From sequence record NC_074633.1: 20,269 bases of DNA. One strand, written 5' to 3'. Below, piece by piece: positions 1 to 20,269 of the stretch (the first letter of the stretch is position 1; every line of letters starts with the position of its first letter). A program made the position numbers and the translations under genes. A model generated the notes under the pieces. The model worked only from the letters and a program-made list of their open reading frames with translations. It did not search any database and was not told the origin of the DNA.

Positions 1-55
1 GTGTAGGCGATTGCGGTGGAAGTTGTAACGTTTAAAATTGACGAAAACTTGTTGG
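1..55 (+). repeat. Left inverted terminal repeat (55 bp perfect)
   Basis: 1-55 is the exact reverse complement of 20215-20269; the first mismatch is at position 56. Confidence 0.97.
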
Positions 56-192
56 TACTTCTAGATTTTTATGCTATAAATCATAGGCTTAGTAGGAGTG
101 AAGTAATCCGCAAGGCAATAGAAAAACTAGTTCAAGACGAAATAAACAAAGAAATAGTGCATAAAGCTAAGGTAGAGAAGTTTAAGCTTTAA
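16..192 (+). CDS. Ribbon-helix-helix transcription regulator, 58 aa (absent from ORF track)
   Basis: Manual translation from GTG16: [58 protein letters not shown]. It has the RHH beta-strand (VVTFKI) and the [10 protein letters not shown] helix-2 signature. Confidence 0.88.
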
Positions 193-216
193 GTTGTCTC
201 TTTTTTGTCTTACATT

Positions 217-663
217 TTATTCATCTTCAGCCTTTTTTTCTTTCTGTTTAAGCATGTATTTTAGCACTCTTTTTATTGTCTCAACATCAAGGTTTAAAAT
301 CTCAAAGTGTAAGTAGTAGTATTTTCCATATCGCCTTTGAATATCGGCGTAATCAATTGGTTCATTTGTGGCGATCAGTCTGTGGTAATGTAGTTTGTGT
401 TTTTCGCCACGCTCAACAACTGAAAACATCTCTGCCTGATATTTTGTTTTGATGTATTCTTTTGGCGGAAGATATGGTTCTGTGTCTAAAGCTTTGTGTC
501 TCACTCTTGCTTTGGTTTTGCCTTTTTTTGCAGTTTCAGTCATTAAGTAGAGATATTTATAACTGTCAACCTTATCAAGAAAATTTCGCAGTTTTTCGAC
601 AGTCGATTGCGAGATATCAAATTTTAGTGAAATCTCTGCGATAATAATGTCTGAATCTATCAC
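217..663 (-). CDS. rep: HUH-superfamily Rep (nicking) protein, SIRV ORF119-like
   Basis: HUH motif KLHYHRLI and catalytic YxxK (KYMLK); near-terminal position as in rudiviruses. The GTG start is uncertain. Confidence 0.85.
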   Translation of the reverse strand: MIDSDIIIAEISLKFDISQSTVEKLRNFLDKVDSYKYLYLMTETAKKGKTKARVRHKALDTEPYLPPKEYIKTKYQAEMFSVVERGEKHKLHYHRLIATNEPIDYADIQRRYGKYYYLHFEILNLDVETIKRVLKYMLKQKEKKAEDE

Positions 664-684
664 AAGAAGAAGATGGATGAAAAC

Positions 685-692
685 AAAAAAAA
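685..692 (-). terminator. Oligo-T terminator after the small RHH gene
   Basis: T8 on the minus strand 7 nt after the stop codon at 700. Confidence 0.5.
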
Positions 693-699
693 GATTTCT

Positions 700-846
700 T
701 TATTTATCACTTTCTGGCAGTTGATCTACAAATTGTCTAATTAAATCGTTTATTGTGATATCATGGTCTATACAGTATTTCTTTAATTTCTTGTGTTGCT
801 CTTTTGAAAGTCTTACCGTTATTAGTACCTTATCTCCGCCTGGCAT
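700..846 (-). CDS. Ribbon-helix-helix (ParG/CopG-like) protein, 48 aa (absent from ORF track)
   Basis: Manual translation: MPGGDKVLITVRLSKEQHKKLKKYCIDHDITINDLIRQFVDQLPESDK*. Alternating strand ITVRL plus two helices; TATA-like TTTTAAA about 33 nt upstream. Confidence 0.82.
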   Translation of the reverse strand: MPGGDKVLITVRLSKEQHKKLKKYCIDHDITINDLIRQFVDQLPESDK

Positions 847-967
847 AGTTCTATCAATTGTTGTATTACGTGTTTACATTTAAAAGCAATAAAGATTTGA
901 GTAATACTAATAATTACGATTTAAAGATTTAAAAATGTTGTCATCAAATCTTGATTTGCGGTGCCAA
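847..967. promoter_or_regulatory. Divergent promoter region between two RHH genes
   Basis: TTTAAAA at 879-885 (leftward) and TTTAAAAA at 928-935 with A-rich AAAGA upstream (rightward). Inverted repeat GTATTAC (863-869)/GTAATAC (901-907); direct repeat AAAGATTT at 891 and 923. Confidence 0.55.
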
Positions 968-4082: not shown

Positions 4083-4409
4083 ATGAAGAATAAGTTTGAA
4101 GATTGGAATAAATATAGATCTGACGTCAATAAGATTATCGTTGAGTATTTTAACAAAGTCGGCATAATGGCGACAACTAGAGCTTTATATTTCTCATTTG
4201 CACAAAAAATATTGGCAATTGTTAAAAAACATCAAGATGGAAGTCTTATTAATAAATTGATTGAAGGAAATATACAATATTTTGTGACTGCATTTGATGC
4301 AAATGAAAAAGTATTGCGTGATATTGTAAAAATTATAATTTTAGCTAAAATTGAGAAAATGGATCCTGATGATATATTGGAAGAAGTTTTGACACAAAAA
4401 GCTAACTAA
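4083..4409 (+). CDS. N-terminally truncated paralog of the major capsid protein (SIRV2-type four-helix bundle)
   Basis: Gap-free manual alignment to the neighbouring MCP: RALYFSFAQK vs RAIYQGYGLK and YFVTAFDANEKVL vs YYVSAFGANPQIL. Confidence 0.75.
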   Translation: MKNKFEDWNKYRSDVNKIIVEYFNKVGIMATTRALYFSFAQKILAIVKKHQDGSLINKLIEGNIQYFVTAFDANEKVLRDIVKIIILAKIEKMDPDDILEEVLTQKAN

Positions 4410-10317: not shown

Positions 10318-10362
10318 GCCACATCTGTGTAATATTTGCATTTTCAAACCTTTTATTGCTCA

Positions 10363-10408
10363 ATATTCAACAGTAATATTCATAATATTCATTATATGCA
10401 TATTAAGC
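10363..10408 (+). repeat. 27-bp element (copy 2) plus ATATGCATAT palindrome in a divergent promoter region
   Basis: 10363-10389 is identical to 1987-2013; 10394-10408 is the exact reverse complement of 17107-17121. Confidence 0.92.
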
Positions 10409-10455
10409 ATTGAATTTATTTTAAGTTGTTGTGACAAAATAGATAACGATAAAAA

Positions 10456-10740: not shown

Positions 10741-12546
10741 ATGAGTAATTTACCCTATCCCTTAAAATACAAATTGCCACTTCAATATTTGTCTGTCGAA
10801 GATTGGAATAATTTTGTAAATGATCTTCTACTAGTTTATAATTCTCCAGTTGGCGCTTTAGCAAAATACTACTCCAAAGGAAATTTGCAAAATTTGAATG
10901 GAATTTTTGCAAAAACGTTAGATGTTGTACAACTTTATGTAAATGGTTATGAAGCGTTATACAATCTTAAGCAAGTTCTGGCATACACTTTTGGCGGTTT
11001 GTTTGAAAAATACAAACTTTACCCCCCAGTTAACTTTCAAGATATTGAGCAATTAACAAAATTGCCAAGTTTCTATGTGCAAAAATACAACATCCCTATC
11101 GCAAAATATAAACAAATAGTTGAAACATTTAATTTCATATTTGAAAAACATTTGCCTAGAATTACAAAAACTATGCAAGTGCTAATTCCCAAACTTTCGT
11201 ATAAATACCTGCCTAAGGCAATTGCGGGCGGAATGACGACAATTTCTGGTTCACAGTCATTATCTCAAATTTTGCAAAACGAATTCGGAATTACAGATTT
11301 TTCGACATGGAAAGGCGTAACAATTGAAAATTTAAGCGATAACAACTTGATTATTAATAATGCAATTGTATTAATGCCAAAACAGTGTTTAAAACTTACC
11401 GCCTCAAGTCCATCAGAAGTTACAATTACTGCTCAACAACCTGCGCTAATTTCAACATTATTAGAATTTAGCGGTATACCTGTGACAGCCTATGCAATAA
11501 CGATAACGAATAGCCAATCTGATCCTACACCTACAAATTTTCAACAATTATTAACGCTTAATTTGTCCGGTATAATTTCTTCACCTTCACAATTATTGAA
11601 TTTGAAATTCTGCCAAGACGTAAATTGCAACACACAATTATACGCATGGATTGAATATTATACCAGTGATTTATCCACAGTTTACGTTTGGGTTTTAATA
11701 CCAGGCGGTATTCCCGCAAATTCTTCAATAACGATATACATGTTTGTAACAAATAAAAATCAATATCCTTACACTGGGATAAATGCATATTACAACACGG
11801 CATACGATAACGGTCCAAATGTCTTTGACGCTTATATGAACTTTATGGGTTCTAGACCAATACCTTCAGATTACAATTATTATACAAATCTTTCTGGATA
11901 TCCAGCGTTTGTCGCTGAAAGTGGAACAACTCCAGGATATTTGGATACATTTCCTAACGCCAGCTATTCCTATGCCGATGTTTATATATCAGCTCCAAAG
12001 TCTGCAAGAGTCCCGGAAATATTTGAAGGTATGGCATATTATGACGGCAGTGTTGATGAGCAAGGAATTTTCTTTCTTGCTAATCCGTCAGGCGGTTGGT
12101 CAACTCCTGCATATACTGTATGTGGTGGAAGTATTAGCGGGGATCTTGAAGTCCCAACAGATGGTTGGGCTGTTACATGGGATCCAGCAGGTTGTACCCC
12201 AGCAGGAATTTTAGGCGGGGGTAATGTAGAGGCGCAAATATCAGGTGCTTTTTTTACATCTTCTGGATATAATTTCTATCAAGCAATAGTTACAGATAAT
12301 GAAATAATTTTCAATGGTGCAACACCAAGTGATCCAACTACTCCATATGCCCAATTGCAAATCCAAAATGTTACTAGTTACAGTGGGACGATTACGATTT
12401 ATGGCAATGCGTTAGGGACAGTCGACAGTTCGTTCACTGATTCACATTATGGATATTGGTATTATCTCAGGGCAAGAGCCTATCCACCAAACGGAGTAAT
12501 GCCGACAAATTCACAACCACAGAAAATTATCGCATATATTGCATGA
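10741..12546 (+). CDS. Minor structural protein (SIRV2 ORF564-like) with a DUF2341-like/lectin-like C-terminal region
   Basis: Position before the large tail gene; YAITITN...LKF...LYAWIE...VWVLIP...IPANSSITIYM...NGPNVF pattern and terminal YYLRARAYPPNGVMP. ATG10741 preferred over GTG10732. Confidence 0.72.
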   Translation: MSNLPYPLKYKLPLQYLSVEDWNNFVNDLLLVYNSPVGALAKYYSKGNLQNLNGIFAKTLDVVQLYVNGYEALYNLKQVLAYTFGGLFEKYKLYPPVNFQDIEQLTKLPSFYVQKYNIPIAKYKQIVETFNFIFEKHLPRITKTMQVLIPKLSYKYLPKAIAGGMTTISGSQSLSQILQNEFGITDFSTWKGVTIENLSDNNLIINNAIVLMPKQCLKLTASSPSEVTITAQQPALISTLLEFSGIPVTAYAITITNSQSDPTPTNFQQLLTLNLSGIISSPSQLLNLKFCQDVNCNTQLYAWIEYYTSDLSTVYVWVLIPGGIPANSSITIYMFVTNKNQYPYTGINAYYNTAYDNGPNVFDAYMNFMGSRPIPSDYNYYTNLSGYPAFVAESGTTPGYLDTFPNASYSYADVYISAPKSARVPEIFEGMAYYDGSVDEQGIFFLANPSGGWSTPAYTVCGGSISGDLEVPTDGWAVTWDPAGCTPAGILGGGNVEAQISGAFFTSSGYNFYQAIVTDNEIIFNGATPSDPTTPYAQLQIQNVTSYSGTITIYGNALGTVDSSFTDSHYGYWYYLRARAYPPNGVMPTNSQPQKIIAYIA

Positions 12547-12600
12547 TTTGATTATTTTTTCCTTAAATGCAATAAATCAAACTACACAATTCTTATAATG

Positions 12601-12627
12601 AATAATATGAATATTCGCATTCAATAT
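12601..12627 (-). repeat. Degenerate inverted copy of the 27-bp element
   Basis: The reverse complement ATATTGAATGCGAATATTCATATTATT matches the element at 21/27 positions. Confidence 0.7.
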
Positions 12628-12678
12628 TGTGCAGTTGAATAAATTATAATTGCATTTGCTGATATTATTTAGATAGAA

Positions 12679-15600
12679 ATGAGCTTTATCATCTCTGGTC
12701 TTGAAAGTTTGGAAACATTCTTTTCAGATGAACTTACTGCTCTGGAAAACTTTACAAACTTTTTAGCATCTGATTTCGTTTCATTTTTCCAAACTGTTTC
12801 AACGGATTTGCAAAATTTCATTTCATTTTTGGCAACTGCAATTAGCGATATTCCAACTTTCATACAACAGAACATATCATATTTTGTACAAGTACTTCAA
12901 AATGTATTTGCAAATATTGCATCTGCAGTATCTGGATTTACACAATATGTTGCAAACGCATTACAAGGCTTTTTCCAAGATGTTGCAAATTTAATGCAAG
13001 GATTCCTAAATGCAATTTATAACTTTTTCTCAAATATTGCAAACGATCTTGCTAATTTTGTAAATGTCGCAGTTTCTGATTTTATACAAGGTTTTAGTCC
13101 GTTAGCGAAATATATTGCCCCCGCTATTCCACAAATTGTAAGCTCAGTCTCCCCAATTATTGCCCCCTATCTTTTAGCTAGGATTTTGCCAAATGCAATT
13201 GACAGATTAGGAGAAATCTTGCCTGAAATTGAAATTGATTTAGCCCCAATCGGTTTAGGTGGGAAATTTAACATTAAATTTGGAGAAATTGCAAAAATGG
13301 TTGGTGAGCCAATTGCAGATCTCATGAAAGAGATCTCTGGTGAAATGATGACTGACCTTAAGGAGTTTTTGAAAGAACCATTTATTTCTAATTTCAAAAT
13401 TACAATAAGAGAAATTTTCAATAGTATTGGACTTGGAGACCTGCCATTTGCGGATCCATCATATCGTGAAATTACGGCATGGTTAGGGGCGAGATCATTT
13501 TCAGAATTGAAAGATCATCTAAAAGAGACACTACTTCTCACTGGTTATCCTGCATGGTTCACTAATGCATTCTTAGAACCGCCAGCTGACGATTATATTC
13601 CTGGAAATCCACTGTTTAAGCCAGTTTCAATTCGTGATGTGATTACTGCAGTTGAATATGGTCTATTATCTTCATCAGCAGTTGAACAATATGCAGAAAA
13701 TAATTTGGTAACGAAAAAAACTGCAAAATTAATGTATCAAAATCAGAATTTGAGATTATTTCAGCGTGTGGTTGAGGAAGGAATAAGAAGTTTTGTCATC
13801 CAGCCGGATAAGGCTTATGATCTAATGTTGTCTGGGAAAGATCTCACAGGAAAAGATCTATTTACAAAATATTTCGAAATATTTTATCAATTTGCGACAC
13901 AAAGATTCGCAAAACAAGTCCTCAGATCCCTACTTTCAAGAGCACTATCCAATTTTGGTAGACCTTATATAGATATAAAGTATTTATCTAAAACAGTTGA
14001 TGAAATATACAAACAATTGAATTTGCCAAAAGAAATCTCCCTATTATTTGGACAATTAATTACAGAATCACAATTAATACAGTACAACGAGTTAATTTTC
14101 ACATTTTTGAGATCAAAAGCTGAAAAAGGAATATTTAACAAAGCAGATGTAGAGAAGTTATTAAAAGAACACAATTTTAATGTTTCTGAATCACTTTTCA
14201 TTTTACAACATTATGTAGATTCAGTTGTTGCAACTGAAGAAATACAACTATTAGAACAAAAACTACAAAATTTCTTTATATCTGACAAAGATGCAGAAAA
14301 TGAATTGAAAAATTTAAAAGTAGATGATAGATATGCAAAACTTTTAATCGAAAGATACTACAATTTGACGTTAACAAAAGAGAAAGCAAACGTATACCTT
14401 TCACTGTTGAAAAAAGGATATTACAACAAACATGAGGCAAAAACTGTATTCAAAGCACTTGGTTACTCAACAAGTGTAATTGATGAACTGCTAGACTTAT
14501 ATTCACAAGAAATTGAGGCAGAATTACAGATAAAGACAATACAACAGAAAGCCCAAATGTTCCTTCTGGATGAACAAGAGATTAACACTGAATTGAAAAA
14601 ATTACATGTCTCTGACGCACTTATTCAAGAAATTGTAACGGAGTATTTGCAAATTCCACTTTTAAAGCAACAAGTTGACGTTTATACATCTCTGATCAGA
14701 AAGGGGTACATAAACGCACAAGAGGCAAAAAGGATATTTTCTGCACTCGGATTTAAACAAACTGCAATTGAACAATTGATCCCACTTTACACACAAGAAA
14801 TTGAAATTGAGGCAACAATTTCGAAATATAAAGCACTTCTTCAACATTTCCTAATTGATGAAAAGGTTGCAGAACAAGAATTGCTAAAACTGCATATTTC
14901 TAATGCATTAATTGACGAATTGTTAACAGAATATTATCAAGTCCCATTGAATGGAAAAATATTCAATATCTACTTTGGTTTGTTAGAAAAAGGATATATG
15001 ACGGCGGAAACAATTAAGCGAATTCTAGGGTCAAAAAATATTAATGCAACTGCACTTGCAGAAATTTCAAACGCTTACAATTTCGCAATTGAAATTGAAA
15101 ATGCAGTTAAATATTACCAGTCATTGCTGAAAAATTTACTAATTGATGCCAAAACTGCGGAACAAGAATTAAGGAAATTAGGCGTTTCTGACGTGTTGAT
15201 AAAAGCAATAATTGCGGAGTATACGCCAGTTTTAGTAAATGTGAAAGCAGTTGCGCAAACAATTATAGAGGGCGCAATATATCATGTGGGCAAAGTTCCA
15301 ATTTCAGTTGCTCATGTCGTGCCAGAATTGAAGAAATTGAACATTCCAGATAACCAAATTAATTCGCTTATAGCTGAAATTGAATCACAAATTGCATTGG
15401 AAATCTGGAAAAAATATTTACCGTCACTTTCAGATATTAAAACTGCGCTGACTTACAATTATCCAATCGACAAATTATTGCAATTATCTCTCATACCTGC
15501 TGAATTATTCAATCTGCATGCTGATCTAACTAGATATGAACTTATCGCAAGAGAAGTACAAAGCTTAAAGTCGTATTACTCAAAATTACTGATCTACGGC

Positions 15601-16027: not shown

Positions 16028-17107
16028 ATGGCCTACGTAAACAAATATTCCATAATTAGCTCATCTGCATGGAATCAAATTGTACAAAATGCGCAACTAA
16101 TTTACAATATTTGGCAACAAGTCGTGAGCGCAATTCAACAACTTACAAATATAAATGCACAAGTAAATTATTCAAATTATCAAACACAACAACAAAATGT
16201 AGCGAATATAATAAGTGGTCTTTCCAGGTATTTGTCCTATCCAACAATAAAAACTCCTACTCCAAATATTCTAACTGCAAGCCCTGGCATGATATTAACT
16301 GCCGACATGATGAATAAAATGGTAAATGCAATACAAAAATTGTATAATTCAATAATGCCAACGCCTGCACCACAAATTTCAGAGGTTTTTGGCGGAGATA
16401 TTGTAACCTCAGATCATTGGAATAAAATCGTTAAAGCAATAAATGAATTACAAAATGCATTTGAAATAATATTTTTACCAGTACCCACACTAGGCGGTCC
16501 CATCATAGGCGGACCAATAATATTACCGCCAGAAAGTTTTTCATTCGATTTAATATCACCATATGTGATTATACCGTTTACACCTAGTTTTGGTATTCAA
16601 GTTAAAGAATATTTAATAGATCTCTTTGTTAAAAATCATATTTTATATTTGATTGCGGGATATCCAGAACCTGCAATAAATACAAAATATACTTTCTCTG
16701 GATCAGAAAAAATAGGCAATATCTTTGCATATGGTTACAATGTAACATTTTCACTGATTGAAAGCGTAAAAATACAGGATATATATCTATATGGAGATTA
16801 CAATAATGTAAACCCGGCATACAATTCAAAAATAGGAAACCTATTAATGATAGGCGATAATAATGTAATAACGGCATCTAATAGTGCAACAATTGTAAAT
16901 GTAACAATAATAGGAAATAACGACACTGTAACTACAAATGATAACTCAGTAATTCAAAATCTTACCGTATGCGGTCAAGGAAATTTAATCTCAGGATCTG
17001 GTATTGTAAATCTCTATTTATGTAATCCTGACAATACTATCGGAAGTGGTGTGCAAAATATAATAACAAGTTCTCCACTATGCCAAGTTGTCTGCGGTTC
17101 AGGTTAG
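16028..17107 (+). CDS. Putative virion spike/adhesin with N-terminal WN-helix repeats and a C-terminal beta-helix
   Basis: Three [IVL]-[ST]-x3-(W/M)N-x2-V motifs; five exact 20-aa I-x-N/D...G-x-N repeats starting at 16712; coupled to the fibre gene. Confidence 0.72.
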   Translation: MAYVNKYSIISSSAWNQIVQNAQLIYNIWQQVVSAIQQLTNINAQVNYSNYQTQQQNVANIISGLSRYLSYPTIKTPTPNILTASPGMILTADMMNKMVNAIQKLYNSIMPTPAPQISEVFGGDIVTSDHWNKIVKAINELQNAFEIIFLPVPTLGGPIIGGPIILPPESFSFDLISPYVIIPFTPSFGIQVKEYLIDLFVKNHILYLIAGYPEPAINTKYTFSGSEKIGNIFAYGYNVTFSLIESVKIQDIYLYGDYNNVNPAYNSKIGNLLMIGDNNVITASNSATIVNVTIIGNNDTVTTNDNSVIQNLTVCGQGNLISGSGIVNLYLCNPDNTIGSGVQNIITSSPLCQVVCGSG

Positions 17108-17166
17108 CTTAATATGCATATGTTTAATATTTGGAATATTACAATTGCGCATTCTGCTTAAAAATG
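17107..17166. promoter_or_regulatory. Inverted copy of the AATATT element plus TGCTTAAAAATG core upstream of the methyltransferase operon
   Basis: 17107-17147 matches the reverse complement of 10368-10408 at 34/41 positions; TATA core at 17155-17166. Confidence 0.7.
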
Positions 17167-18255: not shown

Positions 18256-19311
18256 GTGATAATCTATTACGTTTACCCCATGCATCATGACGTTAGCTTC
18301 AAATTTGTCGCACAAGAGCATATCAAAATGCTAAGAAGCAAATATACTGTCTATGACATTCCAGAGCTTAACTTTTATCAGTTTACACCATACGGGCGCC
18401 CACTGACATTTATCCACCCACTTTTTTACGGTATGTTGAATTGGACCGACATACAGTGGTCATTTTTCAAAATGTACAGATCGAAAGTGTCAAAAATTGT
18501 TGGCGTTGAAGTTGCGGACAGTGACAGAATTTCAGAAAAGTTCATTGAGATTGCAAACTTATGGGCTGACGCACTTGTCGTCAACTCTAAGTGGTCTTAT
18601 GATGCTTATATAAATTCAGGGCTCAAAATTCTAATCCATATTGTACCACATAATTACGATCCAAGACTTGAAGCCCCAGATGATCAATTAAAAGTTTCGC
18701 CAGAAATCAAAAAAATTGAAGAGATAAAGAAAGACAAAAAGATAAAGATCATCTTATTCTTTTCCTGGCATAGCGGTTACAGGAAAGGTGACGATTTATT
18801 TCAGAAGATAGCAAGACAAATACAAAAAGAGAGAGATGACGTTTACTTTATTGTAAAAAGCGCAACACCAAGACAAGATTTGGCAGACTTGAGGCTTTTC
18901 AACATCACTGGCGTAATTCCGTTTGACGATATCGTAAAGCTATACAGAATTTCTGACCTTCTGCTTTTGCCGTCAAGGGGTGGCTCATTTGAACTTAACG
19001 GTCTTGAGGCTTTAGTTAGTGGCATACCAGTTATAGCATCAGATGAAGGACCTTGGACTGAATATTTCCCACCGACATTAAGGCATTTTCTAGCTAAAAC
19101 TGTAAACCATCCAATCGTCCTGCCCAATAATCCAATTCATATCGGTCGTGGAGTAGAAATTTCAGTTGATGACGCAGTAGATAAAGCACTCAAAATACTG
19201 GATAACGTGGAAGAAGAAAAAGCAAAAGTGAGAGATGAAATTGAGTTTTTCCGCAATAACTACAGTTTTGAAGTAGTAAAAAAGAAATTACTTAAGGTTG
19301 TTGAGAATTGA
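18256..19311 (+). CDS. GT-B fold glycosyltransferase (GT4-like)
   Basis: YYVYPMHHDVSFKFVA N-terminus typical of rudiviral GTs; RKGDD and PSRGGSFELNGLEALVSGIPVI. GTG18256 chosen as start because it directly follows the upstream TGA. Confidence 0.92.
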   Translation: MIIYYVYPMHHDVSFKFVAQEHIKMLRSKYTVYDIPELNFYQFTPYGRPLTFIHPLFYGMLNWTDIQWSFFKMYRSKVSKIVGVEVADSDRISEKFIEIANLWADALVVNSKWSYDAYINSGLKILIHIVPHNYDPRLEAPDDQLKVSPEIKKIEEIKKDKKIKIILFFSWHSGYRKGDDLFQKIARQIQKERDDVYFIVKSATPRQDLADLRLFNITGVIPFDDIVKLYRISDLLLLPSRGGSFELNGLEALVSGIPVIASDEGPWTEYFPPTLRHFLAKTVNHPIVLPNNPIHIGRGVEISVDDAVDKALKILDNVEEEKAKVRDEIEFFRNNYSFEVVKKKLLKVVEN

Positions 19312-20136
19312 CTCTGCGTACTTTCTGATAATTCTTGTGTTCATCCTCAATGCTGACGCAGTAACCCCACATTTTTTGTCAATATCTGGTTGAGTTATTG
19401 TATAACCGTCATTCTTTGCAAGATAATACAAAATTGTGCATGCAACAACTTTTGGACTTCTGCCAGAGAAAATGCCAGATTTCTCAATCTCTTTTGAAAA
19501 GTTAAGCGCTTTTTCTATTAATTCAATTGGCAATCCCAATCGCAAACCGCACTCTTTTACAAAATCTTCAACTGCAAAATTTGGTATCTTCTCATCAAAA
19601 TACTTTAACACCTCAAAATAAGCGCTGGTAAATTGTTTTGGCGAAATCTTGTATATCTCCCAAACTTTTTCGACATATTCATCAAACGGCATTAAAATTC
19701 TCAGTTTACGATACGCAATATAGATAGAAACTAAAACAACAATTTCATGACCTAGATATCTTAAATGTTTATTTCCCCACAACTTCTGCAAAATCCTACT
19801 GGCTTCTTGCCTTATGGCGTCATTTCCACCAATTTTTTGAACTGCAGTTACTAAAAATCTTAAAGCTTCCAACAAAGGCTTACTTTCTGCTGAATAAAGA
19901 TTTGAAAGCCTGATGTTTTTCGGTTTTATACCGATAGTTGGCAAAAATCCTGAATTGATGATAACACTTGGATTTATTGGAAAAGCTCTTGCCCTTTCCA
20001 TAAATTGCTCGGCGTTATAAGCTCTCCAGTCCATGCCCTGGTCTACAACTCTATCTTCTAAAACTTCGCCAGTTTCAGTACAGATGAACTCACCTCTTTC
20101 ACTATCAAATACAATTTTGTCTGGTGCGCAACTCAT
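19288..20136 (-). CDS. tfb: Virus-encoded transcription initiation factor B (TFB/TFIIB) homolog, full length and divergent
   Basis: CAPDKIVFDSERGEFICTETGEVLEDRVVDQGMDWRAY mirrors the Sulfolobales TFB ribbon/B-reader; two cyclin repeats (SIYIAYRK; SGRSPKVVACTILY...TQPDI...GVT). Confidence 0.93.
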   Translation of the reverse strand: MSCAPDKIVFDSERGEFICTETGEVLEDRVVDQGMDWRAYNAEQFMERARAFPINPSVIINSGFLPTIGIKPKNIRLSNLYSAESKPLLEALRFLVTAVQKIGGNDAIRQEASRILQKLWGNKHLRYLGHEIVVLVSIYIAYRKLRILMPFDEYVEKVWEIYKISPKQFTSAYFEVLKYFDEKIPNFAVEDFVKECGLRLGLPIELIEKALNFSKEIEKSGIFSGRSPKVVACTILYYLAKNDGYTITQPDIDKKCGVTASALRMNTRIIRKYAESILNNLK

Positions 20137-20254
20137 ATGTGAACATCAAATTGATTACATTTTTATTTCTTGCTATAGCCGATTGCATTTTTATTGCATA
20201 TACATCAAGTCGTTCCAACAAGTTTTCGTCAATTTTAAACGTTACAACTTCCAC
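20105..20254 (-). pseudogene. Truncated or chimeric copy of the terminal RHH gene (49-aa ORF)
   Basis: Manual translation: [49 protein letters not shown]. The first 13 aa are identical to 16..192, similarity continues to YAIK, and the SRSEVIR helix is lost. Confidence 0.65.
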
Positions 20255-20269
20255 CGCAATCGCCTACAC
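20215..20269 (-). repeat. Right inverted terminal repeat (55 bp perfect)
   Basis: Reverse complement of 1-55. Confidence 0.97.

Follow-up and report, generated by a model that had tools for sequence, protein, structure and literature searches.

The right-hand end of the genome record of Metallosphaera rod-shaped virus 1 (MRV1; Rudiviridae, Hoswirudivirus) probably holds the inner margin of a terminal inverted repeat (TIR) that would run on beyond the record, with a truncated copy of a regulator gene abutting the promoter of the viral tfb gene. The window analysed here is the whole record, 20,269 nt (NC_074633.1), and it was 100% identical to GenBank MN876843 (MRV1) across all 20,269 nt. The account that we consider reasonably likely as a whole combines four elements, namely the inner margin of a longer TIR, the replacement of an arm, a remnant open reading frame (ORF) and record edges set by the k-mer of the assembler.

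The nearest relatives of MRV1 are ARV2 (83% over 93% of the window), SSRV1 and ARV3. The paper on MRV1 gave a TIR of 80 bp, took it as evidence of coding-completeness and called the genome coding-complete, described gp01 as a transcriptional regulator and counted tfb among the genes exclusive to Italian rudiviruses (bioRxiv 10.1101/2020.01.16.907410). New with respect to that paper are the overlap of the TIR with gp01, the truncated copy at the tfb promoter and the agreement of the 55 nt with the assembler k. Exact look-ups of the gp01 and TFB sequences returned the MRV1 GenBank record as the sole match, a TFB peptide-pattern scan of IMG/VR found zero relatives, and an exact-pattern scan of IMG/VR and JGI metagenomes for the opening 22-30 nt of the window yielded zero matches. 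The same kind of scan with the tfb promoter block returned ARV2 and four chance matches with no TFB nearby. A word search for homologues of TFB residues 1-70 gave zero candidates, a weak blank given the length and word limits of the search. The public runs that best matched the words of the window were hot-spring metagenomes, which shared 0.21-0.30 of the words in fragmented Logan contigs.

Direct comparison showed that positions 1-55 (plus strand), the first 55 nt of the record, are the reverse complement of 20215-20269 (minus strand) at 55 of 55 positions. The right copy holds a 15-nt spacer, a GTG start and 13 RHH codons identical to those on the left; the earlier note had described the 13 codons encoded by the repeat. 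Its figure of 18 matches in 25 nt for the adjoining segments, 56-80 (plus) against 20190-20214 (minus), was reproduced too, and inverted identity dropped to 3-10 of 25 in the later 25-nt blocks. The likeness is not due to chance, because none of the 40,088 other 25-mers in the MRV1 genome matches 56-80 at 18 or more positions. Both segments span RHH codons 14-22, and against the SSRV1 orthologue the left one agrees at 19 of 25 nt and the right one at 20 of 25. Thus, the two MRV1 copies are as far apart in codons 14-22 as orthologues are, and the outer 55 nt are identical. In the protein alignment, residues 14 and 22 of the right copy are E and K, as is typical of the family, against V and N in the left copy, and codons 14-22 of the right copy are accordingly read as genuine RHH sequence. 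Either an old duplication whose outer part was kept uniform or a right arm from a related virus would fit the extension; with seven differences in 25 nt, an old duplication and a foreign donor cannot be told apart. We interpret the left 55 nt as the innermost part of a repeat that is longer and runs outward.

On the left, the repeat leads into the complete gene gp01 (16-192, plus), which encodes a 58-aa RHH regulator homologous to SIRV2 gp21. The protein matched Pfam RHH_1 with 24.2 bits (cut-off 20.5) over residues 4-39, comprising the strand, helix A and helix B, and matched phrog_876 at 2e-16; its identity with SIRV2 12525-12695 (annotated gp21/ORF59b) was 59.6% over 57 aa. By these sequence matches, gp01 is an RHH regulator of the aCcr1 clade. 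SIRV2 gp21 founds this clade of RHH cell-cycle regulators, which is a core gene in all rudiviruses, is common to many viruses and hosts of the Sulfolobales, and has homologues in ATV, STIV, SMV and AFV1 (PMC9976892). Binding of aCcr1 to the AGTATTA aCcr1-box and its block of cell division were established by EMSA and overexpression (PMC9976892). We also considered whether gp01 is SvtR and rejected this, as a PDB match was absent and SvtR falls in an RHH cluster apart from gp21 (PMC9976892). A T6 run lies downstream of gp01 at 203-208. Since only 15 nt precede the gene within the record, there is no room in the record for its promoter.

The right copy leads into an ORF of 49 aa (20105-20254, minus) that carries no annotation in the GenBank record. 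An RHH remnant of about 22-25 codons makes up its first part; the reading frame then crosses the tfb promoter and stops 32 nt inside tfb (ATG at 20136), an overlap already pointed out in the earlier note. Its first 13 codons are exactly identical to those of gp01, and it has LLERLDVYAIK where gp01 reads differently. Whereas gp01 resembles SIRV2 gp21/aCcr1 in passing the RHH_1 cut-off and in being a 58-aa product about 60% identical to it, the right-arm copy differs from that protein in keeping the strand and helix A only, and it failed the family test with 15.4 bits, below the cut-off of 20.5, over residues 4-24 only. Helix B and its RSE-IRKAIEK motif are missing from the protein alignment. 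Every tblastn match of the ORF stops at residue 21-26, and residues 26-49 are the tfb promoter and the tfb start in another frame, so that the promoter (20153-20173) lies inside the ORF and the description of the latter as a truncated RHH copy over the tfb promoter held. The tail had zero homologues in phage records by tblastn; a word search was also blank, which is weak given its length and word limits. We estimated the chance of a 24-codon open tail at the base composition of MRV1 at about 0.15. Because the RHH likeness ends at residue ~22-25 and the tail is tfb promoter DNA, the ORF is most likely a gene remnant whose product would probably be without function.

The tfb gene itself (gp27; 19288-20136, minus) encodes a viral TFIIB/TFB homologue, with an N-terminal PF08271 domain (Zn_Ribbon_TF, 34.2 bits) and a cyclin-like PF00382 domain (TFIIB, 30.8 bits), both above the cut-offs. 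It is syntenic in ARV2, SSRV1 and ARV3 (77%, 66% and 47% identity, respectively), where it is convergent with or near the glycosyltransferase gene, as in MRV1; YNP1 and YNP2 carry TFB-like genes that are more distant. In MRV1, tfb converges directly on the glycosyltransferase gene with an overlap (19288-19311), and ARV3 is alike; ARV2 and SSRV1 have two extra genes between them, for a putative amino-acid transporter and a ~200-aa protein. Alignment of the four genomes revealed a block at 20153-20173 (minus) that ARV2 shares in full and SSRV1 and ARV3 almost in full. The block comprises a purine-rich BRE and a TATA-like ATAAAAAT (20159-20166) located ~26 nt 5' of the tfb ATG, and from this spacing it would be the BRE/TATA core promoter of a leaderless tfb mRNA.

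The conserved promoter ends where the MRV1-specific sequence begins. The megablast match of ARV2 spans tfb and stops at window position 20173, from which the homology upstream of tfb in the relatives extends, while RHH homology can be followed with certainty to 20190 and perhaps to ~20180. The interval between, 20174-20189 (minus), showed ungapped identity with ARV2 at the random level; it may include RHH-like codons 23-25, and its origin is not assignable nucleotide by nucleotide. The earlier note had placed a recombination junction near 20190. A junction just 5' of tfb stands, and its position is better given as 20174-20189. In all three relatives, ARV3 as the most divergent among them, the tfb promoter is preceded by a shared intergenic element together with a 74-aa gene, a 47-aa ORF and DUF1874, and MRV1 has the RHH fragment at this site instead of these accessory genes; no RHH remnant was found upstream of tfb in ARV2, SSRV1 or ARV3. 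We asked whether the 74-aa gene 5' of tfb in SSRV1 and ARV3 is homologous to the gene that lies 5' of the RHH gene and rejected this, since the two belong to different PHROG families. Because tfb is syntenic and its promoter conserved in all four genomes, parsimony makes tfb and its promoter ancestral to the genus and the RHH fragment the newcomer. On this parsimony the fragment would be a derived insertion or replacement beside tfb and not the reverse, and the event would have left the tfb core promoter intact up to its upstream edge. An assembly chimera at this place, which the earlier note had named as a possible objection, does not explain the junction. A hot-spring metagenome contig of 265 nt, with a word depth of 882, matches 19973-20198 apart from 11 mismatches. 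This span crosses the junction and enters the RHH remnant, and the junction therefore exists in an independent sample; past 20198, its remaining 39 nt are unlike the window.

The edges of the record are very probably not the physical termini of MRV1, judging from the assembly and from related sequences. The genome was assembled from trimmed 150-nt MiSeq reads (Trimmomatic) with SPAdes 3.11.1 at its defaults, and PSV2, an unrelated globulovirus of the same study, was given a perfect TIR of 55 bp (bioRxiv 10.1101/2020.01.16.907410). We found that the perfect repeat is exactly 55 nt in both MRV1 and PSV2 (MN876845), and that identity in PSV2 falls to random at once beyond it. For reads shorter than 150 nt, the largest default k of SPAdes is 55. 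In a de Bruijn graph, a unique region between inverted repeats of at least k is output as a contig that includes, on either side, k nt of the repeat and no more. As the 55 nt equal k, the true perfect repeat is only known to be at least 55 nt. The PSV2 record is probably truncated at its ends as well, with the same assembler-k signature; a search with its ends against other phage records returned no ITR of a relative for comparison.

Sequence beyond the left edge was found in a Logan contig of 1,025 nt from a hot-spring run (L015). It is 94.6% identical to window positions 1-941 (942 nt aligned) and reaches 84 nt beyond position 1; these additional nucleotides encode the C-terminal end of the gene located before the RHH gene. 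By comparison with L015, window positions 1-6 (plus), GTG TAG, are the last sense codon and stop of this upstream gene of the phrog_38502 family, the body of which lies outside the record. A ~76-aa gene of this family precedes the RHH start at a distance of 9-18 nt in ARV2, SSRV1 and ARV3 (43-47% identity between pairs), and a search of the MRV1 window for a gene of the phrog_38502 family gave zero matches. The outward continuation thus comes from a 94.6% relative and concerns the left end; we infer that it also holds for the right end and for MRV1 itself. The virion points the same way. MRV1 particles measure 630 ± 20 nm, and SIRV2 with ~900 nm for 35,450 bp gives 25.4 nm per kb, so that ~24.8 kb would be expected against 20.3 kb recorded (some 4.5 kb short), the lengths being from negative stain in different laboratories. 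The lack of promoter room 5' of gp01, the tail of the upstream gene at 1-6 and the virion length together argue for a longer real repeat. The record therefore probably lacks the true ends, with at least one conserved gene missing per end and ~4-5 kb in total. The term genome ends, as used in the earlier note for these two edges, is thus not supported, since the 55 nt equal an assembler k-mer and the contig of the close relative continues past position 1.

The record could instead be complete, with MRV1 ending at 1 and 20269, an ITR of 55 (+25) nt and the smallest rudivirus genome. This is the reading suggested by the authors' 80-bp TIR and coding-complete label (bioRxiv 10.1101/2020.01.16.907410), and a real 55-nt perfect repeat would yield an identical contig. 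Nevertheless, the k value of the assembler is matched exactly in two unrelated genomes from one pipeline, gp01 with its 15 nt upstream would have no promoter, and 1-6 are the tail of a gene present in the 94.6% relative and in three named relatives; the virion would also be ~22% too long for 20.3 kb. We therefore regard a complete record as improbable. Somewhat better placed, yet still unlikely, is the view that the 55 or more nt belong to a dispersed inverted repeat, beyond which the arms differ and the right-arm accessory genes lie in other contigs. A de Bruijn graph breaks at any repeat of at least k, terminal or not, the arms of ARV2 have in common numerous short inverted repeats that resemble promoters instead of a single long and clean ITR, and the metagenome contig across the junction departs from the window after 20198. 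However, short repeats with different flanks are usually resolved by paired reads, and the ITRs of finished rudivirus genomes (SIRV1, SIRV2, ARV1) are 1-2 kb.

With a longer TIR as the preferred explanation of the edges, the origin of the junction and the fate of the ORF can each be read in another way. In the model of the earlier note, each end once had a complete RHH gene as part of a longer ITR, and tfb was then acquired by landing in the right copy, with the junction near 20190. The abrupt stop of RHH homology just 5' of tfb agrees with this, as does the listing of tfb as exclusive to Italian rudiviruses (bioRxiv 10.1101/2020.01.16.907410). However, tfb stands at one syntenic position in 4 of 4 Hoswirudivirus genomes, with the distant TFB-like genes of YNP1 and YNP2 in addition, its core promoter is conserved to exactly 20173, and the relatives carry the 74-aa gene and the intergenic element at the site that would have held the RHH copy. 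With tfb and its BRE/TATA ancestral, we consider the insertion of tfb highly improbable, and the replacement of the sequence distal to tfb remains our preferred course of events. As for the ORF, its product might be made and act as a poison subunit with gp01 or host aCcr1, or bind the tfb promoter. If the repeat continues outward, the right ORF would have the promoter, spacer and start codon of gp01, and the retained beta-strand and helix A keep E14 and K22. Moreover, the stretch from 20254 to the tfb ATG is free of T runs of five or longer, and therefore transcripts from beyond the right edge would enter tfb. Against a working product, the part with helix B and its motif is absent. The tail is read from a promoter whose conservation has another cause, it has no homologues in phage records or by word search, and by our estimate an open tail of 24 codons has a chance of about 0.15. 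A predicted heterodimer model of gp01 and the 49-aa ORF scored 0.21 against a mark of 0.34, which gives no verdict either way. A working peptide seems to us very unlikely. An extended version, to which we give scarcely more credit, would have the outward repeat put the aCcr1 operon promoter on both arms, the 49-aa half-RHH product of the right arm (strand and helix A) poisoning viral or host aCcr1 dimers and read-through entering tfb; if true, the viral TFB would be tied to the early, terminus-proximal promoter of a cell-cycle regulator.

Under the preferred reading, in which the ORF is a remnant, the right-end 165 nt would be the inner margin of the TIR of MRV1, with the physical terminus further out. 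The inner boundary of the repeat would lie inside gp01, and for this reason the right arm has the spacer, the start codon and the first 13 codons perfectly. Some 9-12 further, diverged RHH codons would follow and abut the ancestral tfb core promoter within 20174-20189. In the direction and mechanism that we infer, the right arm distal to tfb was replaced by an inverted copy of a left arm, and the distal arm thereby lost would have resembled that of the relatives, with the 74-aa gene, DUF1874 and other accessory genes. The donor left arm may have been that of MRV1 itself or of a co-infecting relative, with the break inside the RHH gene, and through later homogenisation the outer part would have stayed identical as far as position 55/56. 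The tail of the 49-aa ORF would then be tfb promoter DNA that is open by chance. The record would stop one SPAdes k-mer (55 nt) outside the boundary between repeat and unique sequence at both sides, and the real repeat would run outward with at least the conserved RHH-preceding gene and its promoter, probably for ~2 kb more per end. If the repeat holds the operon promoter, the remnant on the right arm would begin to be transcribed and translated just as gp01 is on the left arm.

Several other features of these genomes were observed. The arms of ARV2 contain imperfect inverted segments of 77-88% identity (1784-1942 against 26690-26848, and 1-86 against 29662-29747), one of which is the region 5' of the RHH-preceding gene; they point to old, eroded arm duplications in the genus. 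A conserved element of ~45 nt (a T-run, ATGG, TAATTTTTCTCAC and TTTG) recurs 3' of genes in both arms of ARV2 (992-1032, 2386-2427, 4140-4186 and 24745-24791), SSRV1 (465-525, 2236-2284, 22817-22875 and 25658-25705) and ARV3, and its sites include those right after the RHH gene and 5' of the tfb promoter. MRV1 has a degenerate copy after gp01, and its copy 5' of tfb is gone. AATATT-rich palindromic elements are dispersed in intergenic DNA of MRV1 at 1987-2028, 10351-10412, 12587-12633 and 17107-17164, and also occur in ARV2 and ARV3. Within gp22, a minor structural protein of 1115 aa, several joints of metagenome contigs at 14505-15199 skip or return exactly 288 nt (96 codons), which suggests variation in the copy number of a repeat unit of this fibre-like protein among wild variants. 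Hot-spring contigs also join pieces that match the window (18257-18309, ~18646 and ~20135-20173) through a 24-28-nt GTAACAACACAAAGAAACTAAAAC-like unit; these contigs look like CRISPR arrays whose spacers target MRV1-like viruses, with one spacer covering the tfb promoter and start.

The feature is an ordinary gene remnant at a repeat boundary, and its counterparts are known. As in the TIRs of rudiviruses (SIRV1, SIRV2, ARV1) and of other linear, hairpin-ended dsDNA genomes such as those of poxviruses, both arms bear the same sequence in opposite orientation, and the arms hold variable accessory genes. The repeat boundary interrupts a gene, which is complete in one arm and in the other truncated and joined to unrelated DNA. 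Unlike finished rudivirus genomes with their repeats of 1-2 kb, the MRV1 record shows 55 perfect and 25 diverged nt and has no hairpin termini. It resembles in this respect the k-mer overlaps of SPAdes contig ends at collapsed repeats, in that the length equals k 55, recurs in PSV2, and the sequence of a close relative continues past the left edge; in contrast to a pure artefact of SPAdes, the MRV1 repeat is real biology, and what is artefactual is its apparent length and the ends.

The value of the present result lies mainly in curation. In the literature, MRV1 figures as a coding-complete rudivirus of very small size. As the records of MRV1 and PSV2 are probably truncated, comparisons of gene content, anti-CRISPR genes and genome size should allow for it. 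For the family, the right end of MRV1 would be one further example of arm replacement in rudivirus termini, with the polarity of the event corrected, tfb being ancestral and the regulator fragment new.
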